Assembly (NCBI RefSeq): GCF_964204865.1
Contig: NC_135252.1
Span: forward strand, 16,182,001-16,246,000
DNA: 64,000 bases
Reading direction: 5' to 3'
Source: Styela clava
Lineage: Eukaryota
In this document: piece by piece, positions 3,549-54,637 of the stretch
How the letters are laid out: every line of letters starts with the position of its first letter
Position numbering within the stretch: the stretch's first letter is position 1
The notes under the pieces: model-generated
Told to the model about the DNA's origin: nothing
The model's input: the letters and a program-made list of their open reading frames with translations, nothing else
Databases searched by the model: none
Program-made: the position numbers and the translations under genes

Positions 3549-4415
3549 ATGAATTCCAAGACGTTTATTCATCTGTTTCTAATCGCCGTACTGGCATCTG
3601 ACCTGGGACATGCTTGGCTGAAGTGGGACCGAAGACCTTCGGAAAAAATGACAAGCGTTGAAAATGAGGTAATTCTCAAAGGCTAAATCTTTTCATTTTA
3701 GGCCAAACGTATTTTACTAAATTAGCAGCTGTGAAATTTGCTTATGAATGGACAATTCCCTATTTCAATTTAAACTACTCTCCTGTCAACAGAGCAGACA
3801 CTGTCGCAACATTATAACCTCGTGTGAATTTTAGCTCATCACTTCCTATGAATAATCATATATATATTATTTAATACTATTGTATCTAGGATAGCCACTC
3901 ATTCCAACAATATTTGCACAACGCACCAAGAGACATATCTGCATTACATGGTATCGCCAGTATGAACTTAGGTAGGATATTGTATAAACGTCTTATTGAA
4001 AAAAACTGAATTTTAAGTTGAATAAAGCGTACAAATATTTTTTCGGAAATTGACACTTGGGAGGTAAAAGTTGATTTAAAAAAGTTAAGAGTGAAAAAGT
4101 TTTGCCAATTTTAATTCTACTCCATAAGGTTTTACATTTCGAACACGTTGATTTACCGCGTGCACTGATTTTGCATGAAACAGCCCATGCCAATAACCAC
4201 ATTTTGAAACATTCCTCGCTGCATTTTAAACCACTAATAGTAGTCAATTTCGTTAAAGTATATTAAATAGAATACATTGCCATTTTTCTAATATTAATAA
4301 TTTTAAAACAGACCAAATTGAAAAACTTGCCCAGACCATGATGGAGGACAGCAGAAGAAATGACGAAGATCAAGTCGCAGAGGAATTGGCAAACAGAGCA
4401 GCCATGATGCGTTAA
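3549..4415 (+). CDS. Divergent secreted prepropeptide, copy A (101 aa; coding exons 3549-3668, 3890-3971, 4312-4415)
   Basis: Spliced at GT-AG: MNSKTFIHLFLIAVLASDLGHA-WLKW-DRRPSEKMTSVENE|DSHSFQQYLHNAPRDISALHGIASMNL|DQIEKLAQTMMEDSRRNDEDQVAEELANRAAMMR*. Same intron phases (0,1) and motifs (MNSK, WDR, SFQ, MNLD, EEL, AMMR) as the last two introns of copies B-J; ATG directly follows an AG acceptor. Confidence 0.85.
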
Positions 4416-6012
4416 AATGATTACATGATATTTTATTTACTCAGAAATTCAAATTTTATCGGACGGATAGTGCATTTTGACGATATATTATTTCGGTTTC
4501 ACAAAAACAAAATCTAACATGTATATGTTTTTAAAAGAGTGGATTTTAGTTTTGCGGTATATGAGCAAAAGTTTGATCTTGAGACATTTCAACAAATAAA
4601 CGAATATTCCTGAAATTAAATGTTATTATTGTTCATCTGTAAAGTGAAGTGAGAAGTGGGTATACGTATCATAAATAAAATGTAAAGAGAATTACTGTTA
4701 AAACCAGATGTAATGTGTATCATTATTTCACTATATCTGCCAAATCTGAGATAAGTAGTACTTTAATTTTAACGAAAAAATTAAAACATCGGAGACATCA
4801 TTTCATTTTATAGGAGTATCTAAAATACTAAAAATTATCAAAACTAGATTCAAAATAGAATATCAAGCAATATTCAGCTTGGCGACATAAATTTTTGCAA
4901 TAAAGTACCTAAATAAAATAACTGATTTGCGCCCAATTCTATAACATGTATTTTATATTAAAATAATAAATTATATTTGTATTAACAACCAACTTATATA
5001 GAAAGGTTTAGTAAACTCGTAATTTTTGATATAAATTCTCATTTTGTTATTTCAAATTATAGCAAATTCCGTCTTTAAAGCTATGTTCACAATACACTAT
5101 ATATGTTTTAAGAATATTCGGCTTAGATGCGGAACAAATGAAAACGCGTGTATTTCTGGTCCATTTCGAAGCAATTTGGTGTTATTTGTTTTTCTGATGA
5201 AGCTTCGGATTTACTGAATATAAACATTCGAAATGAGCATTTCAATGAATGAATAAGAATTATTATGTGATATATCCACAATCCGTTAGGCCATCAAGTT
5301 GACGAAATTCTGTTAAAGTTTTGTGTGGGTCTTTGCGTCTCGTGTGTATTCCAGCGGATGTTTGTTTATTTCATCACTGTGCTTTTTTGAATCTCAGTTC
5401 ATTGTTGATGAAGTTGATTAATGAGTCATAACTTTGAGCTGGCAGTCTGTTGAACCAATTGTTACTACCATTTACTATATTCAAATTTTAGAAAGATCTG
5501 GATACTGCTAGCAACGATGTAAAAAGTTCAATTATCTTTGAGATAAGCCAATTAATTATTTCACAACTTGAAACAAAATACAATTGTCAAAATATGCGTT
5601 CTGTCTTCGATACACTCTCATGTTTTGGCCTAGGGTCGATATTGACGGGATAATGATATAGCAAGTCTTCCAATTTCACGATATCAATCTTTTTAAAATA
5701 GAAAATGAAAGTCAAAACAATACCATTACGAATGTGATTCAAGACACATTTCCATCCAGGCGAGATGTTGCTGAAATTGTAAACGAAATACATTCAAAAC
5801 GTATGTTAGCCTACAAGCCCAATATTATTGTGCATTCAACTTCCGATTACAGGAATTTCCATAAAATTTCCTACCAAAGTTATTTTTGACATGGAATAAA
5901 TAATAATTTGCTGTTCATAAATGTCTGGGAAAATTTATGTTATGAAAAAACAAACAAAATGGTATTGCCTTAGTCAAGCGTGCTGTTGGGTAAAATGCCA
6001 CTAACGAAGAAG

Positions 6013-6020
6013 TATATAAA
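6013..6020 (+). promoter_or_regulatory. TATA box of copy B (equivalents at 9137, 15475, 22838, 27043, 36196)
   Basis: tatataaa in conserved context in each unit, about 60 nt upstream of a conserved splice donor (gtaagg in C, F, J) that defines a non-coding first exon. Confidence 0.6.
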
Positions 6021-6469
6021 CGCGAAGAATTTGATGCAAATTATATTGAGGCGAATCTACACACAGAAGATGTTAATGGCAGGAACTGGGTATTTCCCTG
6101 CCTATCATTTGTCAAACGATTCGTGTTGATAATTAGAATTTGGCTTTTGGTTTAAACTTTTTGAGCTCTTTTGCTTCCCGTGTTCGATGTGATATGCAGA
6201 CAGATCGCGACGCATTGAGAAACATCTTACGCACAGATTGCCCCATCAGTGATAAATATCTGTTTACATACGTGAAAATGTTTACTACTCATTGATCTAC
6301 CAAAGCTGACGCCGTGTTTTTTCATTTGAAATATTGTCCTCCAAGTTGATATCTCGCACTATATTTGCACTACAGAAAGAATTGAAGAACGTAGAAGAAT
6401 AAGTTATAAAAATAAAGTATATTCAGAAACTAGAAACTATAACTTAATATTACATTATGAATTTTATAG

Positions 6470-7765
6470 ATGAATTCCAAGTTTCTCGTTCTATTGCTCC
6501 TTGTTGCTTTGTTAGCAATTCAACATGGCGATTCCTGGGGTCTGAGACGACGCCGGGGAAAGAAAGGTAGAGGATGGCGTAAGGCAGGGTAAATTTCATA
6601 TTAATAGAATCCATTGGTTATATAATGTAACAATATTGGCAATTTATTGAAAAGTGCATTAGTTAAATTCGGTGAAATTAGCTTACACCTATTTGTTATA
6701 TTTTTGGTAAGAGTGTATTTTGATGATAGATTTTCGGAAAAAGATTTCTCTCGAAACATTTGCAATTTTTCAATCAGACTAAAGAATCATGATTATTTAC
6801 GAGAACAAGTTTTATCATATTTATTTCACTTTCTTGACAAAATACGCCATGTACGTATTCTCCTCAAATCTGTTGTTTACTAACCTAATAGCATTCTTTC
6901 GAAAGGAAATAGAAGACCAGAATTCCGTTGGTTAAACTGGAAAGATGGAGCGTAACCACATTGGTATCACTAGTTCAGCATTAACAGGCTAATTATTTCT
7001 TAATGATAACAGAATTTGGCATTTTTTTCCAGAAAAGTACTTGGCGGCATTGCTAAAGTCGGTCTCAAACTTCTTGGATGGGATCGTGATTCTTTTGAAA
7101 AACTGGCCTATCTGAAAAGCGAGGTTAGCCCTTTTTTATTTTATTTGTCTTTTATTAATTTATTTTATTATTCTATCATTTTTTTTTACTTCTTGCTGTT
7201 ATTTATCTGTATATAGGACAGCGACTCGTTTCAAGAATTTTTGGAGAATGCGAAGGATGAATTCGAAGACGAATTGTCGGATGACGACATGAACAAATTA
7301 GTTTCTGCATTGAATTCAGTCTCTGGAATGAGTCTGGGTGAAATGTTTTTTTTTAAAAAGGAGATAATGCTCTGATACATCCTGTAGTGGAAATTAGCAC
7401 TTGTCCATTTTCAATGTTTCGATATTTTTATCGCTTTCACTATTCTTATAACTCGAATTTAAAAAATTATATCGATATCAATGCATTTGGTGCACTTTAC
7501 ATACTAATTGCCATCACGAAAAAGATTTCCAATATTATATGACTTATTACTTACATATATTACTTCGTATCAAACAAAGTTGCAACCACTCGTATATAGG
7601 TTTATTCGCGATAATTTATTTATTTCTTCTTGTTATTGAACAGACGAAATTGAAGAATTTGCTCAGAATATGAAAAGCAACGATGTAGAAGTTAATGAGA
7701 GCTTAAAGAAAGCTACCCATCAACTCCGGGAGGAATTACTCCTGAGATCCGCAATGATGCGATAA
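6470..7765 (+). CDS. Styelin-like cationic antimicrobial prepropeptide, copy B (150 aa; exons 6470-6588, 7033-7123, 7217-7337, 7644-7765)
   Basis: MNSKFLVLLLLVALLAIQHGDS-WGLRRRRGKKGRGWRKAGKVLGGIAKVGLKLLGW-DRDSFEKLAYLKSE|DSDSFQEFLENAKDEFEDELSDDDMNKLVSALNSVSGMSL|DEIEEFAQNMKSNDVEVNESLKKATHQLREELLLRSAMMR*. Canonical splice sites, phases 2/0/1, signal-cationic-acidic layout. Confidence 0.9.
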
Positions 7766-9609: not shown

Positions 9610-10929
9610 ATGAATTTCAAGTTTCTTGTTCTATTGCTTCTTGTTGCTTTGTTAGCAATTCAACATGGTGATTCCTGGGGTCGGAGAAAGAAACGTGGAG
9701 GAAGGAAACGAAGAGGATGGCGTAAAGCTGTGTAAATTTTATATTAATTGAATCCATTTATATAATGTAACAATATTGACAATTTATTAAAAAGTGCAAT
9801 AGTTAAATTCAGTGACATTATTAGTTTACACTGAAATGTTATTTTTATGGGCTTGGTTTCTCTCGACGCATTTACACTGTTTCTAATCGGACTAAAAAAT
9901 TATGATTATTTTGGAACAAGTTTCATTATAATTATTTCACTTCCTTAGCAACATGCACCATGTACGTCTGCCCTACAAATATGCTGTTAAATAGCTGAAT
10001 AGCTTTTTTTCCGAAAGTTGCCTGATTGGCAATAGAAGACCAGAATTCCGTTAGTTAAACTGGAAAGCTAGAGCGTACCCATATTGGTATCACTGCTTCA
10101 GAATTAACAAGAAACAAGATAATTATCTCTGAAAAATTGTATAATTTTGACTTATAACAAAACAAAATGGTTTTATTCAGAAAAGTCGGTCTTCGATTAC
10201 TTCGATGGGATCGTGATTCTTTGGAGAAACTGGCCTATCTGAAAAGCGAGGTTATCTATTTTCAAACTTATTTCTCTTTAATTATTTCTTTTATCATTTT
10301 GTTTGTCTTCTTACTGGTATTTATTCATTTATAGGACAACGACTCGTTTCAAGAATTTTTGGATGAATTCAAAGACGAATTGTCTGATGGAGACATGAAC
10401 AAATTGGCTTCTGCATTAAATGCAGTCTCTGGATCGAATCTGGGTAAAATGCTTTCTATTAACAAGAAAAGGATGCTTTAAAACATCTCGTAGTTTAAAC
10501 TAGCATTTGTTTAATTTAAATTATTCCATTGATCATTTAATTTCCCATTTCTGTTTTTATTGCTAAATTTAAAAACGCTCATCATTGAACGCCATTGACA
10601 CTTTTTTGTGCTATCATCAAACCAATTTCGATATCATATGACTAATTTCCTAAAATATTACTTTCTATTTTACAAAGTTTCAATCAATCCTATATGTGAT
10701 TATTCGTATTGACTTTTCATGAAGAACGATTTCGTATTGAAAGGAACCCCTTGTCCATATACTTAGTTCGGTGCAATGAACATTCATTACTCCTTGTCTT
10801 TTAACAGACGAAAGTGAAGAATATGCTCAGAATAGGAAAAGCAACGATGTAGAAGTTGACAAAAGCCCGAAGGAAGCTACTGATCAACTCCGTGAGAAGT
10901 TACTCCTGAGAACCGCAATGATGCGATAA
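9610..10929 (+). CDS. Cationic prepropeptide, copy C (140 aa; exons 9610-9731, 10181-10250, 10335-10443, 10808-10929)
   Basis: Core WGRRKKRGGRKRRGWRKAVKVGLRLLRW; in-frame 21-nt deletion in exon 2 and 12-nt deletion in exon 3; open to AMMR*. Confidence 0.9.
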
Positions 10930-11545: not shown

Positions 11546-11649
11546 AGTAACGCCTATTCCATGGGTATTTGTACTCCTGTAGCACAGTAGACTCCATAGT
11601 CCATATCCCCAACATCTTCACCAGTGTCTATCTCAGACAGCACACATAC
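11546..11649 (-). pseudogene. Relic of GIY-YIG gene exon 2, downstream of copy C
   Basis: Acceptor then VCVLSEIDTGEDVGDM.../VLQEYKYPWNRR with a frameshift; homologous to 38733-38831. Confidence 0.75.
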
Positions 11650-13344
11650 CTAAAACGCAAAATTACCTATTACATGCATCACTGCTCTTCTCGATGAAAA
11701 GCATAATTTAGTTTCACTTTATTTCTAACAAGCGTGATATAAAAATTGAGAAGCTTATTAGTCAATTGATATTTTCAATAGGTCATCCGCGAAAAGGTTT
11801 TGAATAAGCGTGTATTATGACTTCTGCCTGAAACATTAGAGCCAACTATTCATATGGCATATGATAACTTATCATGTAGAATTGCAAGTATGTGGTCTCT
11901 CTCTGGCATACAAGTGGGAAAATACCTGCAATTACTAAATTTAATACGAACCATTGGGGCGGGACGGCTGCTGCCAGACTTCGCTTTTCCTGTAATTTGA
12001 GCATTTGTTTTGTTGAGTGCCAATGTTGCACCGGGAGTGTACTGGATCAGGTATGCCGTAATATCTTCTTCGCAAGTTTTAGGCCGCGAGCCGAGGCCAT
12101 TTATCTTTCAGTTTCGTAGCGCACATAAGGTAACTACCTGAAAATGATTTTAAAATGTTCCTTAGAAATTTAGTAACAAATATTGCCTTGTTCCCACTTC
12201 CAAAAGTTGCACGTTTTACAGAAAAGACGCTTTTACCACAATAAATATGTGTTACCATCTGTCCTATTTCCTCTGCTTTCCCGGTATTATGGGCCATTGA
12301 ACGCAGACTTCTGCATGACGTAACAATTAAATTAGTCAGCTGTAGGTGCATCCCCAGTGGTCGGATGAATATCAGATGTACTACTACTGCTCGCTTTTGC
12401 GTTGAGTAGCCTTTCCATAGTTTTTTCAGTTATTATTAGTTCAGTTATTCTAAGGAGGTGTTGAAAAGTATAAGTAAGGTATTAAACACTTGTATATCCT
12501 TACCATAAATAGCAATTTTAGTTGAGCACTAGCTTTTAAAAGACGTTGTTAAATAGGTACGGTGCGGTAACTCCAAGGAAAGCTAGACCTAGAATAATAT
12601 GTCACAAACAACGATATTTTCTGGCTTGCATGAAATGTTTATGATTAATTTAATGACTCTTCTTGACTATTCAGCAGACTTATACTACTATATAGGCCAC
12701 AGCATATTTGGAAATAGAAATTAATGGCTGTTTCTGTATGCACGGTTGTGTGAAAGAGAAGAAAATAATCAATTTTGCTAATGTCGGTTGGTCTAAATCT
12801 AAATTCATAGAGGCGACAAGAACATGGGAAGCAATGATAAGTTATGCCGGAGTGGAAAGAAAGTAGCATTGGAAACGATTGAGAGGTGAGAAATAAAGTT
12901 GTAGACAGACAGTTGATGTTTTAAAATATAGTCTAGGGCTCTAGGCCTATAGTCCATACTCATACTGTCATAGGGCATTTCAGACTGTGACATGTCAAAA
13001 TTTAGTGTAGATATAGTCTAGTAATGGTATGCAAACACTGCTGGACTGTAGTACATTCAATGAGCATATATACGCTCATTGAGCAGGCTACATCATATAA
13101 AATGCATTATGTATTCAAGGTATTAGTTAGTATTTAGTGGTATTTTTACACTCGTACTGTTCCAAAAATGATTTTCTTCCTCATTTTAGATACTGTACTA
13201 CAAAAGAAAACGGCAATGTTCAACCAATCCGACCTAACGCAGGCTCTAATCCCTGCTGCTATCAGTGCTATAAAATGGATTAAACAAGAAGTCTTGAAGC
13301 GTAAAGGTATATGAGAATCATAATAGTTGCAAATTGCAAAATAT

Positions 13345-13623
13345 TCAATGCAGCAACCAGTTTGTTCATGTCGTCATCCGACAATTCGTCTTTGAATTCA
13401 TCCTTCGCATTCTCCAAAAATGCTTGAAACGAATCGATGTCCTATATACGAAATAATAACAGTAAGAAGACAAAATAATGAAAAATGATAGGCTGATGAA
13501 AGAAATAACAAAGGAGTTTGGAACAAGATGACCTAGCTTTTCAGTTAGGCCAGTTTTTCAATAGAATCACGATCCCATCCAAGAAGTCGAAGGCCGGCTT
13601 TAGCAATGCCGCCAAGTACTTTT
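13345..13623 (-). pseudogene. Inverted prepropeptide pseudogene fragment, copy D (exon 2 and truncated exon 3)
   Basis: KVLGGIAKAGLRLLGWDRDSIEKLA*LKS* has two stops; exon 3 breaks off after ALN; intron-1 homology continues to about 13950; no exon 1 or 4. Confidence 0.88.
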
Positions 13624-17255: not shown

Positions 17256-20200
17256 ATGAATTTCAAGTTTCTCGTTCTATTGCTCCTTGTTGCTTTGTTA
17301 GCAATTCAACACGGTGATTCCTGGGGTCGGAGACGACGCCGGGGAAAGAAACGTAGAGGATGGCATACAGCAGGGTAAATATCATAACAATTGAATCCAA
17401 AGTTTATATAATACAGTGGTTCCAACCTTTTATTATATCGCGGCACGCTATTGAGCACTTTAAATAATCGCGGCACTCCTATCTCAAAACATGAACTTTT
17501 CTACTCTTAAAGCCAGTTTGCTATAAAATAAAAATAAACAAAGAAGATCAGACAAAGGGTATTTTATTCATGTGAGTACAAAATACCCTGTATTTAGTAA
17601 CAGGTATAGAGAGACATATATCTAACTCTCTGAGAGAAACACACTTTTAACGCAGGCGAGGGGACTCCAATAATTTCGTCTATATTTAAACACATCTTGT
17701 TTCCGCTTTACAAAATAAACATTACTGAAAAATACGATAGTCGAGCGCGAATGGTTAATAGTTTCCGATACTATAACTATTTTCTTACAATAATGTACAC
17801 GAGAGCGCCTTCGGAGCACCTCACATTATTGTATAAGATAAGCGGCCTCGCGGGTAATATGTGGTCTTCAAACGCACCGTCAATCACGCGCTTCGGTTTT
17901 GCTGGCCCTACCCCGCTCCACGTTACGCCCTTAATATTATCAGGTATTCTTACTTTTACACAATCTTTGCACAATTCTTTTTGTTGCAATCTGATATATT
18001 TCTCCCATTGACAAAATCATTCAAGTCAATTCAATCAATTCAAATTATAGTCAGCACTTGCGAGAGAAATGAAATGCCCGAGCATATATCGATGGTAATG
18101 ATATGTCGAAACGCCTATTCGACTTTTTAGAACGCAAAAACTATTCGAAAAACGTAACACAGTACGCAGTACAGTCTTTGCACAGTAATTTGTTTCCTTG
18201 TTTGACATTTTTAATTTTACGAAACGGTGTTGGCGCTCTTTATGCTAAACTAAGAATTGAAAAATACCCAAATTCGACTCCTCAAATATGTCGTTTCTGT
18301 TTGTTAGGAAGAGCCGTGGGGTAATTCTCGCGGAATTCAAGAGATTGGAGATCAAAAATGAAATCTCTTCGCGGCACACCAATGTGGCACGGTGGTTGGG
18401 AACCACTGATGCAATGTATATAACAATATTGCCAATTAAAATGCCGGGATGACACTTATTTGTAGTATAAATATGGCTCTAATTTGATTGGTCAGTAGGA
18501 GTTAACATTCTTTATGTATACGTCTTATTGAGGACGTAACTCAAAACAAAAGAAATAAAACATTTTTGCGTCGTTTTCAAGCTTGATATATGCTTGTCCG
18601 AGTGTTTGTGACCCCCCCGTTGCGCGTCCAATACCACCCCGTTGCGCGTCACTTTTTTTTCGCATATTTTCAATTCTGCGAGTTTTATATCTGTAAGTAT
18701 TTGAAAACAAAGAAATATACAGAGGAATATGTTATTACTTGAAAGAAACTAATTTGAGCGAGCGAGCAATCGTTCTCGGCGCGTAAACAAGGTAGTAATC
18801 ATTACCCGCACAATAATAAACAAACAAGGATCGCGTTCGCTCGAAACTGTTGGCGAAAACATGCTCTCTTTGTATCTTGAATATTTTGCGTTGCGTTTCG
18901 CTCCAGAATGCCACTCTTATCTCGTTTGAAAGACGACGATCTTCTCCATTTTTGGGATATTAGATGTCGAGTCCATCTGGCTTGTATTTATCACTCCGAT
19001 TTGAAATACAGAACTTTTTTCAAATTTTTTTTTCACATCTCTCGTTTCAACGCAACGGGGTTGAGACAAACGTGCTCGTGTCTCGAGAAACATTTTGTAT
19101 GAAGCGACGTAGATACTCTTTCAAAAGAAATCGCAGTGAGGTCTCTCGCACGTAAAGTAGTGACATTTTGTAGAAGGGGGATTTTTTTTCAAAGAAGAGT
19201 TGGTTTTAGAGGAAAATATTGACAATTTATTAAAGTGTGCACTAGTTAAATTCGATCACATAATTAGTTTACACCTATTTGTTATATTTTTGATCATAGG
19301 TTTTCGAAAAAAGTTTTTCTCAACACATTTGCAACATTTCCAATCAGACTAAATAATTATGATTATTTACAAGAACAAGTTTTAGCATATTTATTTCTTG
19401 ACAGCATAGGCCATATATTTCTGTCCCAGAAATCTGTTGGTTACTAACCCAATGGCATTCTTTCGAAAGGAAATACAAGACCAGAATTCCGTTGGTAAAA
19501 CTGGAAAGATAGAGCGTACCCATATTAGTATCACTGCTTTAGAATTAACAAGATAATTATCTCTGAATGATGGTGAAATATTAGCTTATATTGAAACAAC
19601 AAAATGATTCTTATTTAGAAAAGTAGTTGGCGGCATTGCTAAAGTCGGTCTCAAATTTATTCCATGGGATCGTGATTCTTTGGAGAAACTGGCCTACCTA
19701 AAAAGCGAGGTTATCTTTTTTACACTTATTTATTTTTTATTATTTCCTTTATCATCTTATCATTTCGTCGTAATATTGTTATTTATCTGTATATAGGACA
19801 GCGACTCGTTTCAAGAATTTTTGAAGAATGCGAAGGATGAATTCGAAGACGAATTGTCGGATGACGACATGAACAAGTTGGTTTCTACATTAAATGCAGT
19901 CTCTGGAATGAATCTGGGTAAAATGTTTTATTAACAACAGAAAAATGTAGTTGAAACCAGCACTTGTTTATTTTCAATGTTTCGCTATTCTTATCGATTT
20001 CACTATTCTTATAACACGAATTAAAAAAATTATATCGATATCGATGCAATTGGTGCATTTTCCATAATAATTGCCGTCACGAGACAGATTTCCAATATCA
20101 TATTACTTACATATATTACCTCGTATTAAACAATGCTCCAACCACTCGTAAATGGGTTTATTCGCGCTGATTGATTTATTTCTTCTTGTCGTTTAACAGA

Positions 20201-20321
20201 CGAAATTGAAGAGTATGCTCAGAATATGAGAAGCAACGATGTAGAAGTTAATGAAAGCTTAAAGCAAGCTACTGACCAACTCCGTGAGGAATTACTCCTG
20301 AAAACCGCAATGATGCGATAA
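17256..20321 (+). CDS. Cationic prepropeptide, copy E (150 aa; exons 17256-17374, 19619-19709, 19797-19917, 20200-20321)
   Basis: Core WGRRRRRGKKRRGWHTAGKVVGGIAKVGLKFIPW; splice sites and frame intact; intron 1 expanded to 2244 nt by insertions. Confidence 0.88.
17414..18408. mobile_element. hAT (Charlie/Buster-like) non-autonomous element in copy E intron 1
   Basis: Termini cagtggttccaacc / ggttgggaaccactg; subterminal cgcggcac repeats; degenerate 8-bp TSD (atataata / atgcaatg); absent from paralogous introns. Confidence 0.78.
18438..19214. mobile_element. Unclassified insertion in copy E intron 1
   Basis: Absent from the introns of copies B and C; flanked by aatattgccaatt / aatattgacaatt direct repeats. 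Confidence 0.5.
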
Positions 20322-28337: not shown

Positions 28338-28606
28338 AGGAAGCTACTGATCAACTCCGTGAAAAGTTACTCCTGAGAACCGCAATGATGCGATAAGTTC
28401 CGAATGCCGCTCTACTAATTCATATGACAAGATAATAAATTTTCAAGCTTTTATTCAAAATACGTCATGAATATCTACATCCGCAAAAACAACGAGGCGA
28501 CAATTCTACATATGTGTGTGCCATGTTACTTGGATCAAAAATTTATCCATATTGTTTCTGAAATCTAGCAAAAGTTATGCTTATAGTATATTTCTTTATC
28601 GAGTTA

Positions 28607-34959: not shown

Positions 34960-35845
34960 TTAGTAGAGCAGCGTTCGAAACATTGCGGTTCTGAGGAGTA
35001 ATTCCTCACGGAGTTGATCGGTAACTTGCTTTAAGCTTTCATTAACTTCTACATCGTTGTCTTTCATATTCTGAGCAAATTCTTCAATTTCGTCTGTTCA
35101 AATACAAGGTAAAATAAATCAATTAACGCGAGTAAACCTACATTCGAGTGATTGGAACTTTGTTTGATACGAAGTAATATATGTAAGTATTAGGTCATAT
35201 GATATTGGAAATCTGTGCCGTGATGGCAATTAGTATGGGAAATGCAGCAATTGCATTTGTAGATATCGATATGATTTTTTAAATTGTTGCTAAAGGAATA
35301 GTGAAAACGATAAAATTAACGAAACATTGAAAATAAACAAGTGCTAGTTTCAACTACAGGATGTATCAGAGCATCTTCTCTCTGTAAAAAAAAACATTTT
35401 ACCCAGATTCATTCCAGAGACTGAATTTAATGCAGAAACCAATTTGTTCATGTCGTCATCCGACAATTCATCTTTGAATTCATTCTTCGCATTCTCCAAA
35501 AATTCTTGAAAAGAGTCGCTGTCCTATATACAAATAAATAACAGTTATATGACAAAATGATAAAAAATGATAGAACGATAAAAGTAATAATAATAAAAGA
35601 TAAACGAGTTCGAAAAAAGATAACCTCGGTTTTCAGGTAGGCCAGTTTCTCCAAAGAATCACGATCCCATCGAAGAAGTCGAAGACCGACTTTAGCAACG
35701 TGGCCAAGTACTTTTCTGAATAAAAGTCATTTTGTTTTATTACCAGCCAATATTAGTGCACAATTCATAGACTGTCAACAAGGGGTTCAATTACTTTAAA
35801 ATTTACCCTGCTGTATGCCATCCTCTACGTTTCTTTCCCCGGCGT
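34960..35845 (-). pseudogene. Inverted prepropeptide copy I lacking start codon and signal peptide
   Basis: Exons 2-4 open (KVLGHVAKVGLRLLRW...; ends RTAMFRTLLY* after loss of the normal stop); a deletion joins intron sequence (ctataacta) to acgccggggaaag, removing acceptor, ATG and signal peptide. Confidence 0.88.
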
Positions 35846-36659: not shown

Positions 36660-37601
36660 ATGAATTTCAAGTTTCTCGTTCTATTGCTCCTTGTTGCTTT
36701 GTTAGCAATTCAACATGGTGATTCCTGGGGTCGGAGACGACGCCGGGGAAAGAAACGTAGAGGATGGCATACAGCAGGGTAAATTTAATAGTAATTGAAT
36801 CCCTTGTTGACAGTCTATGATTTGTGCAGTAATATTGGCTGGTAACAAAACAAAATGACTTTTATTTAGAAAAGCACTTGGCCACGTTGCTAAAGTTGGT
36901 CTTCGACTTCTTCGGTGGGATCGTAATTCTTTGGAGAAATTGGCCTACCTGAAAAGCGAGGTTATCTTTTTTTGAACTCGTTTACTATTTATTATTTATT
37001 TTATCGTTCTATCATTTTTTATCATTTTGTCATATTACCGTTATTTATCTGTATATAGGACAGCGACTCTTTTCAAGAATTTTTGGAGAATGCGAAGGAT
37101 GAATTCAAAGACGAATTGTCGCATGACGACATGAACAAATTGTTTTCTGCATTAAATTCAGTCTCTGGAATGAATCTGGGTAAATTTTTTTTTTTAACAG
37201 AGAGAAGATGCATCCTGTAGTTGAAACCAGCACTTGTTTATTTTCAATGTTTCGTTGATTTTATCGCTTCCGCCATTCCTTCAGCAACAATTTAAAAATT
37301 ATATCGATATCTATTGATGCATCCGGTGCATTTTTCATACTAATTGCCATCACAAGAGAAATTTCCAATATCATATGACTTATTACTTACATATATTACT
37401 TCGTATTAAACAAAGTTCCAACCACTCGTATATAGGTTTATTCGCGTTAATTTATTTATCTTCCCTTGTTTTTGAACAGACGAAATTGAAGAATTTGCTC
37501 AGAATATGAAAAGCAACGATTCAGAAGTTGACGAAAGCCTAAAAAAGGCTACTAATCAACTCCGTGAGGAGTTACTCCTGGGAACCGCATTGATGCGATA
37601 A
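36660..37601 (+). CDS. Cationic prepropeptide, copy J (150 aa; exons 36660-36778, 36870-36960, 37059-37179, 37480-37601)
   Basis: Core WGRRRRRGKKRRGWHTAGKALGHVAKVGLRLLRW; intact TATA, UTR-exon donor (36262) and splice sites; ends GTALMR*. Confidence 0.9.
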
Positions 37602-41227: not shown

Positions 41228-41542
41228 AAAAGTAATTGGGTGGGATTGATAAAGCCCGTATCAAACTTCTTGGATGGGATCGTGATTCTTTGGAAAAACT
41301 GGCCTATCTGAAAAGCGAGGTTAGGTCTGTTTTTAAAACTTATTGATCCTTCTTTATTTCTTTCATCATTCTTCTAGCATTTTGTCTTCTTACTGTTATT
41401 TATCTGTATATATATATATAGGACAACGGCTCTTTTCAAGAATTTTTGGAGAATGCGAAGGACGAATTCAAAGACGAATTGTCGGATGACGAAATGAACA
41501 AATTGGTTTCTGCATTGAATTCAGTCTCTGGAATGAATCTGG
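41228..41542 (+). pseudogene. Prepropeptide copy K (exons 2-3 only)
   Basis: Exon 2 frameshifted (aaa gta att ggg tgg gat tga); exon 3 (41422-41542) open; exons 1 and 4 missing. Confidence 0.85.
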
Positions 41543-43446: not shown

Positions 43447-44368
43447 TGTAAGTTCGAAAATTGGCATTATCTTCTATCAATGGGGATTTCCCTAAAGTGA
43501 AACGACAAATGGAAAATTCCAGCTGTCCACATATGTTGCAATCGACTCTCGCTGGACAAGTCTAATCTTGCCTCGCTCTCACGTGACTCGCTGCCGTGTT
43601 TGACGGCAGTCGTTGCTTAATATTCGCATAGATTGCTTTTTATGTGTTAAATTAGTTACGTTTAACGTCCGGTTGTAGGGATAATAATTGCCCATACCTA
43701 AGGCTTATGTTATTGGAACATATAACTGCTGTAACTTTTATTGTAGAATATTATATAAGCTATAAATAGACTGTAATTTGATTGATTGATTCTCTGAATC
43801 CTGAACTGAAATTGAAGTTATTTCTGAATATTTGTTATCGCTTGGCTTAAAACGTTTCGGTAAGTTTTAGTATTTGTTGTTTATGATAAGAATTCTTGTT
43901 ATTAGTTCAAATAATATTCCAAATAATAATAATTAATTGGTATTTAAATAGTATATAGTATTTCATGTTAATTAAATACTGTCAGTAGAGCTAGACAATG
44001 TCGCATTGTTTAATGATTAAGTTTGCAAGTGCTTTAATGCATTATTGTTATTTTCTGTGGTCTGTATTTGAATATTTTCATTTAAATTCAGAAAACCGCT
44101 ACGCTACACATCACCATACACATTGCATCATTCTGTTATTAGTACGCTACACCTCTTTAACCTCATTCAACATTGTGAACTGTTTTATTGGATTTAATTC
44201 AATATATCAAATTTCATTGTACAACATTTGATATTTGTGGCATTGGAGGACACACTGAGAGTTGCGCGTTTTCGAATAGTTTTTCAAGAACCAAAGAACA
44301 GCCAGATATTTCAGTCACCCCCTTATGCGACACCTGTATTTGCCAGGATACATAGAAAAGGTGTTACA
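43447..44368 (+). repeat. 5' LTR
   Basis: Six substitutions versus the 3' LTR by manual comparison. Confidence 0.95.
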
Positions 44369-44391
44369 TAATAAGTTTTCGAAACGAAATC

Positions 44392-47300
44392 ATGAACTTG
44401 AGTTCGAGTGATGAAGATTACTCACCCAGAAAACTGGCTTTGAGGCAACTGACTAACTATACAACAGCCGCTTGTCAGAAGATGCCATCACTGGCTGATG
44501 TCAAAAAACAACGTACAACATTAGAACATTTATATTTCATGGCTGAAAAAGCAATTGCTGATCAGGATTTGCATGTGCTAAATTCTGTTATGTCAAGTAT
44601 TGATGATCCTTTTGCCAAACTTGTGGAAATGTACTCTGAGAGTATATCAGCTGCACCCAATGATGAAATAAGATTGAAATTCGAAAATGAACTTTGGAAT
44701 GTGAATAAAGACATTGACAACCTTTTTGCTCGAGTACGTGAATTCACACATTTACAAAACCCCAAAACGTGGAGTTCAAATCAATGCAAAGATTCTGAAC
44801 TTCCCGATTCCAGAAGAGAAAGAGCGGAAAGTGAAGTCGTGTCCTTGTCTGGTAGCATACGAAGTAAACGCTCTTATGCGAGTAGCAAGACATCAATATG
44901 CAGCAAAGGGTCTGTACATATGGCCAAGGCACAAGTTAAGCGTGAAAGAGCTCGAATTGCATTGCAAAGAACAGAAGCAAAGCAGAGAATTGAAGATGAA
45001 AAACGCAAAATTGAACATGAAAATCAAATATTGGAAGCAAAATTTGATTTGCAAGAAGCAGAGGCTGCTGTTTGGGAGAATTTGTCTGTGGTTGATGATG
45101 CTGGAAGTTCTCGGTCTTCATCAGATATATTCATCAGATCTGGTGTTCAAAAGGAAGCTACAGCTGTAGTAACTTCGCGGACTGTAGAACACGAACAACA
45201 ACCTGAGAGAAACGTTACTAATCAACAGGTGGTAAGTCAATCATCTCCTATCGCTACAACTAAACCTGCTGTTTCACCTAAACAAGATGTGGTGTCTTCA
45301 AGCAATGATGACAGCGTGAATTCTGGATTTTCCCAACAGTCCGCTGATTTTGCACTGAACACAGATTCAAATAATGAACATAATATATCTAAACCTTTGG
45401 TCACTGACACTGATAAATTTGCTCAGAGTATAGCCAGAGCTTTTGGTGAAGCCATGCATGCTCCAAAGTTGGAATATTTGACATTTTCTGGTAATCCTAT
45501 TAACTACTATATTTTCAAGAAAAATTTTGAAACTAATATTGATGCTAAAGCACCCACAGATGCCTTGAAATTAGCTTTCTTACTGCATCAATGCAAAGGA
45601 AAAGCGAAATCGCTCATACAACACTGTTCTATATTTGAACCAGAAGTGGGTTATGCCAAGGCTAAAGATATTCTTCATAAGAAATTTGGAGATTCAGATG
45701 TTGTAACTGAAGCTTTTAAAGAACAGTTGCATCGTTGTTCGAATATAAAACCAGATGATCATGCAGCACTGCAAGACTATGCTCTTTTAATGAGAAAATG
45801 TGTTCTTGTGCTCGGTAAGCTTGATAGCCTTGGAGAAATGAATACATCTGATCGTATTATCGATTTTGCCAGTAAGCTACCATACAGCTCACAGAAAGGA
45901 TGGGAAAGGAAAGCTGTGAAGATCAAAAATAATACTGGTAAAAAGGCTCAGATATGGGACTTGGCTGATTTCATTGAAGAGGAAGCTGATATTGCAGGTT
46001 CAAATACTGCGAAATCATTGAACATCAGAAGACGTGAAGATAAGCCACAACAAAAACGGCAATCAACACGAAAGTCTACAACTTATACTGTGAAAACTGA
46101 GGATGTCAAAGCAACTTCTCATGTCCAGAGTCCTGCTATTTTAAAATGTAAGTGTTGTTCCTTTTCCCACCTTTTGTCAAAATGTGAAAAGTTTAATTCT
46201 AAATCGATTGAAGAACGAGTAAAATTCCTGAAAGAAATTGGTTTCTGCTTCAATTGTCTACGTGGAGGTCACTTGGTAAAGGACTGCAAGTCACAATATA
46301 CATGCTCTGTTAAAGGGTGTGGACGAAGACATCATACTTTGTTGCATTTAAATACAAAGAAATTAGAAAATGAAGAAAATGCAAACTTCAAAAAGAATGA
46401 TGACAAACAAAGCTCAATTCAGAAGAATGTGACTACTGCAGTTCAAGCTAATTCAAATGCATGCAAGAGCTCCATGTATACTTACAGAAATATTTTGCCT
46501 GTCAGGATTCGAGCAAATAACGTTGAAGTGGAAACATATGCTCTGGTCGATATTGGGTCCGACACAACTTTTTGTGAAACAAGCTTAATTGAAGAACTTG
46601 GTTTGACTGGAAAACAAAGAACTGTTGAAATCAACACATTAGGACAACGACCAGTCATGCATGATGGTGTTGTTGTAAATCTCACTGTTGCATCAATTGA
46701 CGATGCAGAAGAAATATTCATTGAAAATGTGATGTCTATTGACAAGATTCCAGTTCAACCAAATCCTATTCCATCTGAAGAAGAACTCAAGCTACTTCCT
46801 CATCTGCAAGAACTTAATCTACGTAAAATTAAAAATAAAAATGTTTCTCTGCTTATTGGAACTGATTGTCCATATGCACATCATGTGTTGGAAGTTCGAA
46901 CTGGAAACAAGAAGCAGCCATTTGCACAAAAGTCTCCATTGGGATGGTCGATTATTGGACCATCAGTGAATATGCCATCAACGCACAAGATTCATGTCAA
47001 CTTTGTGAAGTCTGATATGTTACTCGAAGAAGAGATAAGAAGAACATGGTACACTGATTTTGAAGATGAGATTGGAGATTTGACATTTCCAACCTCGAAA
47101 GAAGATAGACATGTTCTAAATTTTCTGAAGAGCTCTGTAGAGCATTTCGATGGTCATTTCACAATACCTTTACCTTGGCGTCCTGGGACACAGCTGCAGA
47201 GCGGAAGTCTTGCATTGGCTGAACGCAGATTGGAGTATCTCCATAAACGTTTGTCTAAAAATGATGATTTGAGAGAGAAATACACAGAAAAAATGCAGGA

Positions 47301-48363
47301 ATATATTACAAAAGGTTTTGCGAAAAAGCTTTCGCAAGAAGAAGATATCCCTGCAGGTCCTGTTTGGTATTTGTGCCACCACCCGGTGTGTACCGCAAAC
47401 AAACCGAAAGTGCGTATCGTATTTGATTGTGCTGCAATTTATAAAGGTGTTTCTCTTAATGACACTCTCATGCCTGGACCAGACTTGGTGTCAAGCCTTA
47501 TTGGTGTGTTGACTCAATTTCGTAAGGGACGCATAGCTTTAGTTGCTGATATTGAAGCTATGTTTCATCAAATTAAAGTTAAGAAAGAAGATTGCAATGC
47601 TCTGCGATTTCTTTGGTGGCCAAATGGTGATATTTTAAAGAAGGCAGAATTATATTTCATGGAACGTCATATATTTGGAGCTTGCAGTTCACCTTGCATT
47701 GCTTCATTCTGCTTGAAGGAAACCGGAAAACGATTTGGTCATGAATTTGATAAAAGAATTTGTGAGATTATTGAAAATGGATTTTATGTAGATGACTGTC
47801 TTACATCTTCTGATAGTGATGAAGATGCAATAAACACAAAAACACAACTTTGTAATTTGATGAAGAAGGGAGGTTTCAATCTAACGAAGTGGATTTCAAA
47901 TAGTTCCACTGTGATGGCCAATATCCCAGAATCTGAACATACCAAATCTGTGAAAGAGTTGGATTTGCATGAACCTCGAAAAGAGCGTGTTCTTGGAGTT
48001 TTCTGGAATGTAGATGCCGATGCTTTTCAATTTCGTTCAACTGTACCTAAGTTGAAGACATATACAAGAAGGACAATTTTATCTGCAGTTAATTCACTAT
48101 TTGATCCCCTGGGAATGCTCGCTCCCGTGATTCTGGTAGCAAAAATGTTGCAACAAGAAATCATCGAAAAAGGTTTCGGCTGGGATGAAGTAATTACAGA
48201 AGACAATATTAAAGACTGGGACACTTGGTTCAAACAGCTCACTGATCTTGAATATATTTCGATTCCAAGATGTTTCAAGCCACAAGAATTTGGAAATATC
48301 AAACATTGTGAGATACACCATTTTTCAGATGCTTCTAGCTTCGTATTTGAGGCTGGTCGATGA
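44392..48363 (+). CDS. BEL/Pao gag-protease-RT polyprotein, N-terminal part (frameshifted in RNase H)
   Basis: Triple Cys/His knuckle (CKCCSFSHLLSKC, CFNCLRGGHLVKDC, CSVKGCGRRHHTLLH), protease ALVDIGSD, RT KVRIVFD / ADIEAMFHQI / YVDD, RNase H start HHFSDAS. Confidence 0.93.
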   Translation: MNLSSSDEDYSPRKLALRQLTNYTTAACQKMPSLADVKKQRTTLEHLYFMAEKAIADQDLHVLNSVMSSIDDPFAKLVEMYSESISAAPNDEIRLKFENELWNVNKDIDNLFARVREFTHLQNPKTWSSNQCKDSELPDSRRERAESEVVSLSGSIRSKRSYASSKTSICSKGSVHMAKAQVKRERARIALQRTEAKQRIEDEKRKIEHENQILEAKFDLQEAEAAVWENLSVVDDAGSSRSSSDIFIRSGVQKEATAVVTSRTVEHEQQPERNVTNQQVVSQSSPIATTKPAVSPKQDVVSSSNDDSVNSGFSQQSADFALNTDSNNEHNISKPLVTDTDKFAQSIARAFGEAMHAPKLEYLTFSGNPINYYIFKKNFETNIDAKAPTDALKLAFLLHQCKGKAKSLIQHCSIFEPEVGYAKAKDILHKKFGDSDVVTEAFKEQLHRCSNIKPDDHAALQDYALLMRKCVLVLGKLDSLGEMNTSDRIIDFASKLPYSSQKGWERKAVKIKNNTGKKAQIWDLADFIEEEADIAGSNTAKSLNIRRREDKPQQKRQSTRKSTTYTVKTEDVKATSHVQSPAILKCKCCSFSHLLSKCEKFNSKSIEERVKFLKEIGFCFNCLRGGHLVKDCKSQYTCSVKGCGRRHHTLLHLNTKKLENEENANFKKNDDKQSSIQKNVTTAVQANSNACKSSMYTYRNILPVRIRANNVEVETYALVDIGSDTTFCETSLIEELGLTGKQRTVEINTLGQRPVMHDGVVVNLTVASIDDAEEIFIENVMSIDKIPVQPNPIPSEEELKLLPHLQELNLRKIKNKNVSLLIGTDCPYAHHVLEVRTGNKKQPFAQKSPLGWSIIGPSVNMPSTHKIHVNFVKSDMLLEEEIRRTWYTDFEDEIGDLTFPTSKEDRHVLNFLKSSVEHFDGHFTIPLPWRPGTQLQSGSLALAERRLEYLHKRLSKNDDLREKYTEKMQEYITKGFAKKLSQEEDIPAGPVWYLCHHPVCTANKPKVRIVFDCAAIYKGVSLNDTLMPGPDLVSSLIGVLTQFRKGRIALVADIEAMFHQIKVKKEDCNALRFLWWPNGDILKKAELYFMERHIFGACSSPCIASFCLKETGKRFGHEFDKRICEIIENGFYVDDCLTSSDSDEDAINTKTQLCNLMKKGGFNLTKWISNSSTVMANIPESEHTKSVKELDLHEPRKERVLGVFWNVDADAFQFRSTVPKLKTYTRRTILSAVNSLFDPLGMLAPVILVAKMLQQEIIEKGFGWDEVITEDNIKDWDTWFKQLTDLEYISIPRCFKPQEFGNIKHCEIHHFSDASSFVFEAGR

Positions 48364-50380
48364 AAATAATCAAATACACTGCTCATTTTTATGTGGTAAA
48401 GCAAAGGTGGCTCCTCCGAGGGCTGAAAGCATTCCTAGACTTGAACTTGTTGCTGCTGTGCTAGCTGTAAAGGCAGATAAGTGGCTACGATTAAAGTTGA
48501 ATTATTCCGATTGTGAGTCCGTATTTTGGACTGATTCGAGTGCAGTGCGTCAAAGCATATGTAATCCAAGAAAACGTTTTCGTACCTTCGTTGCAAATAG
48601 ATTGGCCAAGATTCATCGACAGTCAAAGCCGTCTCAATGGCGACAAGTGCCTTCAAAAATCAATCCGGCTGATGACGCATCACGAGGCTTATCATTGAAA
48701 ACTCTCATCAATAAAAGTCGTTGGCTGCTTGCACCTGAATTTTTATGGAAGACCGAAGATAGTTGGCCAAGAAATTCTGAAGATAAAACGGACCTGCCTG
48801 ATGAATTTCAGCCAATTGAAAGAAAGAAAGTGGCAACAATTATTGCTTCGGATATTGACACAATTGACAACTTCATTAAAAGCTTTTCTGATTTACAAAG
48901 GCTCAAGATTGCCACTGCATGGGTGTTACGCTATAAAAGTTTCCATCGTAACCACAATTCTGTTACCACAAGAAATATAACTGTGGAAGAAATGCAATAC
49001 GCAGAGCAAGCACTTGTGAAATATGTTCAGCAGCAGAATTACAAATCTGTCATTGATAATTTATCAGACAAAAGTGAAATTGGTGACAAGAAGGCTCGTC
49101 ACGAGATGAAGAAAGCTGAGCATACAAAGTCAATTGCAAAACTAGATCCAATTATAACTGATGGAATTCTACGGATTGGGGGGAGGTTGGATAAAGCTCC
49201 TATTTCATTCGAAATGCGACATCCCATCATTTTACCAAATGATCACCACTTAACCAGATTAATCATTGACTTCTATCACAAGAAAGTTGGACATCCAAGT
49301 GTTTCTCATACTTGGAATGTTATTCGTGAAAAATACTGGATCACAAGACCGAGAGCAACAATTCGGCATGAATTAAATAAATGTGTGACCTGCAGAAAAG
49401 CTAACACACGACAAGGAGAACAGTTAATGGCTGAACTGCCATCTGCTCGTCTAAAGGTTGGTCAACCACCATTCTATTCAACAGGAATCGACTTCTTCGG
49501 CCCATATTTGATCAAACGTGGGAGAAGTGAAATCAAAAGATATGGCTGCATATTTACATGCCTCACAACAAGAGCTGTACATATTGAACTGGCAGAAGAT
49601 TTATCCACTGATGCTTTCATAAATGCTCTTAGGAGGTTTATGGCAAGAAGATCAAAACCTTTTGAATTGCACAGTGACAATGGAACTAATTTTGTTGGAG
49701 CAGAACGAATATTACGAGAAGAAATGCATAAGCTCGATCATACCAAATTAGATGGATTCTTCAAAAAACAAGAAATCCGCTGGTATTTCAATACTCCAAC
49801 AGCCAGCAACCAAGGAGGTTCCTGGGAAATTTTAATTCGATCAATAAGAAGAATTTTGAACAAGATATTTTACAAATCTCCTGTTGTATCTCAAGATGTT
49901 CTGCATACTGCACTCCTGGAGGCAGAATACATAATCAATTCAAGACCTTTGTGTCCAGTTTCTTTTGATCCAAGAGATAATGCACCATTATCTCCAAATC
50001 ATCTACTTCTGCAAAAACCAACACCATGTATTTCACCTGGATTATTCAATAATCAAGATTCCTATAGTCGTCTACAGTGGCGTCGAGTTCAACTTCTTGC
50101 TGACGAGTTCTGGAGGAGATTCTGCAAAGAATATTTGCCAACCATAGCCATTCGTCAAAAATGGCCGGACAAGACAAGAAACTTCACTGTTGGGGACATA
50201 GTACTTGTGGTAAACAACAGTGTACCAAGGGGCAAATGGGAAATGGGACGAATTGTCAACACATATCCGGATCGATTTGACATAGTTCGTAATGTAGATG
50301 TCAAAACTCAATGGGGAGTACTGAGAAGACCAATCAACAAGTTATGTCTCATTCAAGAAGCAAATGTGGAAGAAAAGTAA
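48340..50380 (+). CDS. BEL/Pao RNase H-integrase, C-terminal part of the same polyprotein
   Basis: SYLRL..KAKVAP..SIPRLEL, WTDS, NPADDASRG; HHCC zinc motif; DDE core GIDFFGP / SDNGTNF / WE; C-terminal GDIVLV...RPINKL. Confidence 0.93.
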
Positions 50381-50586
50381 TGAAAGAACTGAACTGTTTA
50401 AAACAGTTTTTTATGGACTGTTTATTCAAGATGAGAAATCTTGAAAATATTGCACATTTACATACAAGTTGAGATTTCGTCAATTTTTATTATTTGACCA
50501 TAATTTCGTTTTCTGCAATTTTTGAACTTTTTGTTTTTAAGGGAAATGTATTTATTGTCCCAATGCATACATTTGGGGGGAGTTTA

Positions 50587-51508
50587 TGTAAGTTCGAAAA
50601 TTGGCATTATCTTCTATCAATGGGGATTTCCCTAAAGTGAAACGACAAATGGAAAATTCCAGCTGTCCACATATGTTGCAATCGACTCTCGCTGGACAAG
50701 TCTAATCTTGCCTCGCTCTCACGTGACTCGCTGCCGTGTTTGACGGCAGTCGTTGCTTAATATTCGCATAGATTGCTTTTTATGTGTTAAATTAGTTACG
50801 TTTAACGTCCGGTTGTAGGGATAATAATTGCCCATACCCAAGGCTTATGTTATTGGAACATATAACTGCTGTAACTTTTATTGTAGAATATTATATAGGC
50901 TATAAATAGACTGTAATTTGATTGATTGATTCTCTGAATCCTGAACTGAAATTGAAGTTATTTCTGAATATTTGTTATCGCCTGGCTTAAAACGTTTCGG
51001 TAAGTTTTAGTATTTGTTGTTTATGATAAGAATTCTTGTTATTAGTTCAAATAATATTCCAAATAATAATAATTAATTGGTATTTAAATAGTATATAGTA
51101 TTTCATGTTAATTAAATACTGTCAGTAGAGCTAGACAATGTCACATTGTTTAATGATTAAGTTTGCAAGTGCTTTAATGCATTATTGTTATTTTCTGTGG
51201 TCTGTATTTGAATATTTTCATTTAAATTCAGAAAACCGCTACGCTACACATCACCATACACATTGCATCATTCTGTTATTAGTACGCTACACCTCTTTAA
51301 CCTCATTCAACATTGTGAACTGTTTTATTGGATTTAATTCAATATATCAAATTTCATTGTACAACATTTGATATTTGTGGCATTGGAGGACACACTGAGA
51401 GTTGCGCGTTTTCGAACAGTTTTTCAAGAACCAAAGAACAGCCAGATATTTCAGTCACCCCCTTATGCGACACCTGTATTTGCCAGGATACATAGAAAAT
51501 GTGTTACA
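50587..51508 (+). repeat. 3' LTR
   Basis: Direct repeat of 43447-44368, followed by the GGTAC TSD. Confidence 0.95.
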
Positions 51509-52623: not shown

Positions 52624-53257
52624 ATTGAAATTGCAAGATGATCCGTTGGACACAAAATGGCGTCCGATACCCGCAGAACGTTTAGTGACGTCATAGCAAA
52701 CAAAAACAAATCTTACAGAGCTAACAGAAATATTTGAAATAAATAAAAGTAATAGCCTTCTGGAGAAAAATTTCATCTTCAACCACTGAAAATTTCAAAG
52801 CAATTAGTCCAGTAATCAAAGAGAAAAGCGACTTTTTAAAAACGTGTCAAAGAACAAGAATAAGAACAACAACAACAACATAATATTGAAACGATCGTTA
52901 TGTCCACTACGTGTCCAAAAATACAACACTAAATGAACTGCAACGGCATCGCACGCAAACAGCAACAGCGTTCCAACATCAGCTCACTGTCCAGCACAAA
53001 AACATCCAACAATCACAATCCAACAATCACAAAACCACCAACAAATATCCCCGATAACCGGAGACCAGAGGCACTCCCACAGACACAAAACACCCGAAAT
53101 CCAACCGAAAACAACTACACTGTACGGTACCAACCACAGCTCACGCTAACAGGTCACACCAACGACTGGGTCACACCCCGAAGACATACCGACAGTGTCA
53201 CAGCGCCCCCAGTGTCTTCAATGCCAAAATACCAAATATAGAAACAATATCACATGA

Positions 53258-53946
53258 CATCATTTAACAGATAAAACAAGGGTCGTCACATCTCCATATC
53301 AATACCTGAAGTAAAAGCATATTATTTGAGATTAAATTACAGACAAGAATGAACTGAAACTTAACTGAATAACATATTTTGACAGATTGTGAATAAAGTG
53401 ATCGTACAGAGAACTAGATCTCGTATCAAATGCAACCGCTCAATAACTAATGATTGGTGAACATTTGCGATAAGTTTGCGATTTGTTTAAGTAAAACGAT
53501 TATACTCGCTGCAATCATGCTGGGAAATTGGACTTTCTCGAATACTTTCCAAAAGTTGTAGAATGTCATTAGACAGGACATACTTTTTTTTGCTGTGCAA
53601 TTTTCCATCAATGTGATAAACACATTTTTATTATTGATAAGATCCTATTCATTTGACCAGGAATCTTTAAACGGAAGAATAAATGCATACTTAGGTTACT
53701 ATGTGTGGTAAATCATTTCTAGAAAACACAAATTGCGATTGGTGTTTATGCTAATAAAAAGTACAGTTGTACATATTGTTTCTTGTTCAGATCTATGATG
53801 TCGTCGAACATATGTTGCAGTATTGTCACTATTATCATACGTCACAGTAAATGGTACGCCGCGAAACTGAATTTTTAAGGTTTTAAGCTTCCCGTTTTTT
53901 TGAAGATTAATTTGTCGTTGGATTTTACTCAACTTTGAGAAAACTT
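53258..53946 (+). repeat. 689-bp segment almost identical to 58443-59131; older relatives at about 29560-30240, 40750-41100 and 61110-61990
   Basis: One mismatch noticed between the two recent copies; diverged copies share gcatattatttg.gattaaattacagac and gattggtgaacatttgcgataag. Confidence 0.88.
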
Positions 53947-54096
53947 TTCGAAATTCCAAAAGTTGTGGATCTGCAGTTAAATAGTCCAATAGCTTTCCAA
54001 TAGCCCAATTGGCAAATAAGAGAGACCAAAATTCCATTGTCTAAGTGGAAATATAGAGCGTACGCACATTGGAATCACTAGTTCTTCGTGATTCCA

Positions 54097-54637
54097 GGAT
54101 CGTGATTCTTTGGAAAACTGGCCTACCTGAAAAGCGAGGTTAGGTCTGTTTTTAAAACTTATTTAACTTTCTTTATTTCTTTCATTATTCTTTTAGAATT
54201 TTGTCATATTACCGATATTATCTGTATATAAATAGGACAACGACTCGTTTCAAGAATTTTTGGAGAATGCGAAGGATGAATTCAAAGACGAATTGTCGGA
54301 TGACGACATGAACAAACTGGTTTCTGCATTAAATTCAGTCTCTGGAATGAATCTGGGTAAAATGTGATATAAACAAGGAGTAGATGCTTTGATACATCTT
54401 GTAGTTGAAACTAGCACTTGTTTATTTTCAATATTTTGATATTTGTATCGTTTTCACTATTCTTATACAATGAATTAAAACGGCCATCACGAGACAATAT
54501 TTCAATATTATATGAATTATTAAGCATAAATAAATAAATAAATGAAAAACATTGATGTAGAAGTCAATGAAAGCTTATAGAAAGCTACTGATCAAATCCG
54601 GGAGGAGGTACTCAAGAGAACCGTAATGATGCGATAA
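54097..54637 (+). pseudogene. Prepropeptide copy L (3' part of exon 2, exon 3, damaged exon 4)
   Basis: Exon 3 (54236-54356) open; exon 2 truncated and frameshifted; exon 4 lacks its acceptor and has an in-frame TAG before ...RTVMMR*. Confidence 0.85.

Follow-up and report, generated by a model that had tools for sequence, protein, structure and literature searches.

A 64,000-nucleotide (nt) stretch of Styela clava C3 (NC_135252.1, positions 16,182,001 to 16,246,000 of the forward strand; hereafter the window, with positions counted from its first letter) carries, within 3549-54637, twelve copies of a gene whose coding sequence is divided among four short exons. These copies probably represent a lineage-specific tandem array of S. 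clava genes that belong to the wider styelin superfamily and encode precursors of secreted, linear, cationic host-defence peptides. From their sequences, we infer that the products would be antimicrobial.

A first-pass annotation of this DNA had proposed a tandem family of at least twelve spliced, styelin-like precursor genes, and the motifs it named were found in many copies in a six-frame motif scan of the window. Direct-repeat analysis of the window likewise showed a unit recurring many times across 5-55 kb. Copy F was read first and has AG/GT at every internal boundary; its exons were used as the reference unit. A BLAST comparison of these four exons with the window, combined with phased translation, recovered all twelve copies listed by that annotation (A to L), of which five are intact, one has a frameshift in exon 4, one is without a core and five are fragments. 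The cores of B, C, E, F, G and J were intact as proposed, G being additionally frameshifted in exon 4, and the description of A as divergent and of D, H, I, K and L as fragments was confirmed by BLAST and direct reading. In the gene model the coding exons measure 119, 91, 121 and 119-122 nt; each internal exon is preceded by AG and followed by GT, and all junctions are GT/AG. The copies, and one retrotransposon lying among them, are as follows.

3549..4415, plus strand: copy A, divergent, three exons (3549-3668, 3890-3971, 4312-4415) with GT/AG junctions, read directly.
6470..7765, plus strand: copy B, intact, four exons (6470-6588, 7033-7123, 7217-7337, 7644-7765).
9610..10929, plus strand: copy C, intact (exons 9610-9731, 10181-10250, 10335-10443, 10808-10929), equal to XP_077966843.1 piece by piece.
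13343..13623, minus strand: copy D, a fragment comprising exon 2, interrupted by two stop codons, and the greater part of exon 3, from BLAST and phased translation.
17256..20321, plus strand: copy E, intact (exons 17256-17374, 19619-19709, 19797-19917, 20200-20321), equal to XP_077967070.1 piece by piece.
23308..24254, plus strand: copy F, intact, 149 codons, the reference (exons 23308-23426, 23517-23607, 23706-23826, 24136-24254), equal to XP_077967406.1 piece by piece.
27452..28393, plus strand: copy G, with signal, core and exons 1-3 intact (exons 27452-27570, 27661-27751, 27849-27969, 28276-28393).
32676..33258, minus strand: copy H, two exon-4 fragments only (BLAST matches 32676-32760 and 33221-33258).
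34975..35845, minus strand: copy I, inverted, start codon and signal lost, exons 2-4 open (35625-35715, 35403-35523, 34975-35093).
36660..37601, plus strand: copy J, intact, 150 codons (exons 36660-36778, 36870-36960, 37059-37179, 37480-37601), equal to XP_077967420.1 piece by piece.
41265..41542, plus strand: copy K, a fragment comprising the 3' part of exon 2 and the whole of exon 3, from BLAST and phased translation.
54097..54634, plus strand: copy L, a fragment comprising the end of exon 2, the whole of exon 3 and a stop-containing part of exon 4, from BLAST and phased translation.
43447..50886, plus strand: BEL/Pao-type long terminal repeat (LTR) retrotransposon inserted in the array, not a family member, recognised from its LTRs and domains.

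The four exon pieces of copy B are all found exactly in one database protein (P0016). In copy C, exon 3 is shorter by 12 nt and the core is shorter, at 28 residues; a 1-nt deletion in exon 4 of copy G (118 nt) leads to an early stop; exon 1 of copy I is reduced to 35807-35845. Exons are 84-93% identical between copies, with lengths kept and almost no indels, and introns are 72-81% identical, indel-rich and 90 to 2244 nt long (the first intron of copy E measures 2.2 kb). Nei-Gojobori counts per exon, small in number and with split codons skipped, put the ratio of nonsynonymous to synonymous differences per site (pN/pS) at 0.23 in the signal and 0.32 in the propiece; in the core it was 0.66, and some core pairs exceeded 1. 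Since exon lengths are kept with hardly an indel, introns are indel-rich and the signal and propiece show such low pN/pS, a chance origin of the exon structure is excluded. Low values in signal and propiece together with a higher value in the core are the usual pattern of antimicrobial-peptide genes. It is very improbable that the array consists mostly of decaying duplicates, with RefSeq models that are unexpressed predictions. Of the twelve copies, seven are indeed broken, truncated or without a core, transposons have inserted in the array, and one RefSeq model joins two copies; against this, five copies keep all four exons open with splice sites intact, signal and propiece are under purifying selection, and indels are present in introns and absent from exons.

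The exons were searched individually and never joined, and full-length analyses used RefSeq or database proteins. When an exon-3 peptide profile was compared with 1.84 billion proteins, full-length spliced proteins were recovered, which are S. clava RefSeq "uncharacterized proteins". Five window copies correspond to XP_077966842.1, XP_077966843.1, XP_077967070.1, XP_077967406.1 and XP_077967420.1, which agree with the exon translations piece by piece. Thus, the gene described by the first-pass annotation as hidden is hidden from an open reading frame (ORF) track but not from RefSeq, where these five copies are modelled. Neither the gene identifiers nor the core strings were found in the literature searched, and no description of such an S. 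clava family was found there, although the five gene models already exist in RefSeq. Two models are unusual: in XP_077966842.1 (210 aa), the 3' part of copy A is joined on to copy B, and the helix exon is missing from an older isoform of LOC120343414 (118 aa). They may reflect read-through and alternative splicing, or else be model artefacts. Directly before the ATG of every copy lies a pyrimidine-rich run ending in AG (14 nt, e.g. 23294-23307), which is also seen in an upstream paralogue and in the Styelin-E gene; the run is suggestive of a trans-splice acceptor, or of a non-coding exon lying upstream.

The precursors are 149-150 residues long and consist of a 22-residue signal, a 28-34-residue core and a 90-94-residue acidic propiece. 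Cores contain 12-14 K/R and no D/E, for a net charge of +12 to +14, and propieces carry -10 to -14. In XP_077967406.1 (copy F, 23308), a 22-residue signal is followed by a core of 34 residues, 13 of them K/R and none acidic, and by a 93-residue propiece whose net charge is -14 and which includes 24 D/E. The predicted layout of a 22-residue signal, a core of 28-34 residues without acidic residues and an acidic propiece of about 90 residues was therefore correct, the K/R count now being 12-14. The core has two parts, a W-G-R5-G-K-K-R-R leader and a G-W-initiated amphipathic helix segment, in which an 18-residue window has a hydrophobic moment of 0.66 that was matched by 0 of 2000 shuffles. Copy A differs in that its signal is followed by W-L-K-W at the core position; it is without leader and helix, and its propiece is shortened. 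Two features of precursors of antimicrobial peptides that are linear, cationic and alpha-helical, a cationic amphipathic segment and a neutralising anionic propiece, are present. As anticipated, the cores match no printed peptide in a literature text search. AlphaFold2, run with a seven-sequence alignment, placed five helices in the propiece (residues 57-149, predicted local distance difference test (pLDDT) 77-87). A Foldseek search of the PDB with this model found nothing at E<=0.001, and all Pfam matches of the propiece fell under their cut-offs.

We then compared the genes of the array, hereafter the window family, with styelins. The styelin motifs that the first-pass annotation had named are right: Swiss-Prot Styelin-C/D/E (O18494-O18496) carry the LVAL..IQ..EA signal end, EEFQ(E/D)F and REEEL. 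SFQEF and REELL occur in the right order in window propieces. The styelin signal peptide has a published length of 22 (PMC8659048), and the window family has a styelin-type 22-residue signal, supported by hhalign (E 7.6e-4 over residues 1-25), with which BLASTP and alignment agree. BLASTP E values in the homology set were 2e-11, 7e-9 and 4e-4; pairwise, XP_077967406.1 matched Styelin-C at E 4e-4 across signal, G-W and the FQEF motif, with the leader as an insertion before G-W and SFQEF opposite EFQEF. By hhalign, the window family matches paralogues lying upstream of the window over the full length (99.7% probability, E 4e-25), and these in turn match styelins across signal, peptide and propiece (95.9%, E 6e-9).

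Gene structure provides a further line of comparison. The Styelin-E gene was located on C10 via a 32-residue styelin D string, later confirmed against Swiss-Prot, and its translation is identical to Swiss-Prot O18496. Its coding sequence is split into four exons (113, 58, 57 and 18 nt): a phase-2 intron interrupts the mature peptide, and the propiece is broken after its second residue by a phase-0 intron. In the window genes, as in Styelin-E, intron 1 is in phase 2 inside the peptide and intron 2 is in phase 0; in the profile alignment with Styelin-E the phase-0 intron falls in exactly the same column. The two groups share the species, four coding exons, a homologous 22-residue signal, G-W at the aligned helix start, FQEF and REE(E)L, an acidic C-terminal propiece and a charge-balanced precursor. 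In contrast, the window family has a 12-residue W-G-poly-Arg leader inserted after the signal, has no Phe and no K-H-K, and ends in W before D, whereas styelins are Phe-rich peptides of 31-32 residues that start with G-W. The propiece, which the first-pass annotation had rightly called much longer, has about 93 residues and is predicted to be helical, compared with 26 residues in styelins. The third intron is in phase 1 in the window family and in phase 0 in styelin, and the window genes are on C3 while the styelin gene is on C10.

Several results weigh against reading the array as styelin-related host-defence peptide genes. A direct hhalign comparison of the window family with styelins reached 25% and covered the signal peptide only. 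Pfam PF17562, which gives 124-134 bits for true styelins and 8-11 bits for the upstream paralogues (curated cut-off 27 bits), had no match at E<=10 for five window-family proteins. The window family is without the F-Y-K-K-H-K motif and without a terminal Gly amidation donor. In the AlphaFold2 model, pLDDT is below 50 for residues 1-49, so that confidence in the helix is low. The pN/pS counts are few, the pairs are not independent and gene conversion is possible, and the RefSeq models may be partly ab initio. Nevertheless, the chain through the upstream paralogues and the shared intron positions argue that homology to styelins is real but remote. The window family is a divergent branch of the styelin superfamily and, since PF17562 finds no match, not styelin in the strict sense. 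The earlier proposal of a styelin-related family is therefore supported by the hhalign chain, the BLASTP match and the shared intron phases, as a remote relationship outside PF17562.

The paralogues that link the two groups are four in number and lie 4-40 kb upstream of the window (C3:16.14-16.18 Mb); they include LOC120342944, LOC120343457 and LOC120343518, which are unnamed in RefSeq. They are about 36% identical to the window family and resemble it in signal, poly-Arg leader, four-exon structure with its phases, and long propiece. Unlike the window family, they have cores of 51-53 residues that keep a styelin-like K-F-Y-K-R-(H/N)-(K/R) centre, and their sub-threshold PF17562 matches fall at the right place. 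A word-indexed search with exon 1 of an upstream paralogue gave no match. In all three clades, the charges of core and propiece balance: +13/-14 in the window family, +18/-20, +22/-16 and +23/-22 in the upstream paralogues, and +5 to +8 against -8 in styelin peptides and propieces. The extra acidic length thus tracks the extra arginines, and the locus is a clear case of propiece length following peptide charge. This balance, in which the leader is counted, speaks for a stored pro-form that still contains it.

The same genes could nevertheless release another mature product, with poly-Arg a convertase-type processing spacer that is removed and the active peptide a G-W...W helix of about 22 residues, starting with G-W like every styelin. 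BLASTP sets G35-W36 of the window family on the G-W of the styelin mature N-terminus, hhalign places the G-W of the upstream paralogue type likewise, and R-x-K/R-R motifs occur in the leader of all copies. However, the propiece charge follows the whole core with its leader (the helix alone has about +4), copy B has no K-K-R-R site directly before G-W, and the leader, the most conserved feature over at least 34 loci whose downstream peptides are unrelated, is better kept than a spacer would require. We regard removal of the leader as rather unlikely.

Those loci were found with a profile of the first 32 residues, which detected the signal-plus-leader exon at least 34 times in the genome. They include the window array, its four upstream neighbours, the C10 styelin locus, eleven loci on C18 (11.39-11.46 Mb) and four on C3 (7.75-7.78 Mb); a few others have very different cationic continuations. 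The helix exon is confined to the window array, and a suspected resemblance of the helix to clavanins was not supported, since a genome search with this exon matched that array only. We tentatively put forward, as possible though short of an even chance, that the signal and W-poly-Arg exon is a conserved cassette defining a large unrecognised S. clava host-defence superfamily. This superfamily would comprise at least 34 loci, grouped in about eight clusters and differing widely in their cationic cargoes, and classical styelins would be a leaderless offshoot of it with a short propiece. If so, the retained arginine leader might be a new functional module, for example in salt-tolerant binding or cell entry, and each leader-bearing precursor would carry a matched helical acidic domain.

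Other loci were seen alongside these. The eleven genes on C18 (C18:11393465-11461177) encode the same signal and W-poly-Arg leader, followed by a long His/Tyr/Arg-rich or Cys-containing sequence unlike styelins. Secreted cationic peptide genes with a styelin-type signal and no poly-Arg leader occur at C4:7117238 and 7121200, with products that start with G-W-F-R-R and are very Lys-rich, and at C2:24385037 and 24389852, with Tyr/Arg-rich products. Two Logan-derived, exon-3-like acidic ORFs (P0005 and P0009), on short contigs, resemble the upstream paralogue type and may hint at a long propiece in other tunicates.

Secreted cationic proteins may also serve purposes other than killing microbes, such as packing granule polyanions, binding nucleic acids in extracellular traps, cytotoxicity to the cells of other animals, or reproduction. 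Poly-Arg runs bind any polyanion, and what is predicted for the propiece is not a simple acidic tail but a folded helical domain, one that matches no known fold. Homology to proven antimicrobial peptides of the same species points the other way, as do the amphipathic helix within a charge-balanced precursor and the tandem expansion with a fast-evolving core, and we hold a non-microbicidal role to be improbable.

The precursor of botryllin, from the styelid Botryllus schlosseri, is 158 residues long: 23 form the signal, 37 the peptide, of charge +11, and about 98 the propiece; botryllin is antimicrobial when tested and is made by cytotoxic blood cells (PMC9966394). The window precursors, at 149-150 residues with a long C-terminal propiece, are similar in build, but botryllin has no poly-Arg leader by its authors' delineation and keeps the K-H-K motif. 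Botryllin was compared through three published 12-mers only. The one with K-H-K has matches in the upstream paralogues and in Styelin-C; the one from the junction is similar to the window G-W-D-R-D-S junction, with a score reached by 2 of 500 shuffles; and the third had no match among the compared proteins. Kinship of botryllin with the window family is, on these short strings, a possible lead. B. schlosseri itself was rejected as the source of this DNA, the botryllin primer being absent and the EF1-alpha primer showing 2 mismatches. Precursors of pleurocidin/piscidin and clavanin resemble the window family in the layout logic of signal, cationic peptide and neutralising anionic propiece, and not in any demonstrated sequence relationship; alpha-defensins likewise have a neutralising anionic propiece, but an N-terminal one.

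The remaining sequence between and beside the copies contains mobile elements. The 300-nt repeats at 43447 and 50587 are 100% identical and represent the LTRs of the BEL/Pao element, and its ORFs (44392-50380) bear Peptidase_A17, RVT_1, rve and DUF5641. Two further pairs of 300-nt repeats, 99-100% identical, are found at 53258-53557 / 58443-58742, which flanks fragment copy L, and at 57614-57913 / 59125-59424; both probably stem from recent mobile-element or segmental duplication. At 38733-39562, only short ORFs are present, on both strands.

Under the reading that we favour, a styelin-related array encoding host-defence peptides, the 22-residue signal would be cut after G-D-S, at a position that aligns with the known styelin cleavage site. 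The resulting pro-form would be near-neutral, the +13 N-terminal module being offset by the -14 helical propiece, and this may let it be stored safely in the granules of blood cells, in the manner of styelins and botryllin. The propiece would be long because the extra positive charge must be balanced. Cleavage near the conserved W|D-R-D-S junction would free the peptide, whose disordered W-G-poly-Arg leader may bind anionic microbial surfaces while the amphipathic helix disrupts membranes. The array supplies several natural peptide variants that can be directly tested for salt-tolerant antimicrobial activity.

Since 1997, styelins have been regarded as a small set of 81-residue precursors. The locus described here gives a genomic framework tying styelins to botryllin, and it suggests that styelins are part of a far larger, fast-diversifying superfamily in the same animal, with an arginine leader and a charge-matched long propiece.

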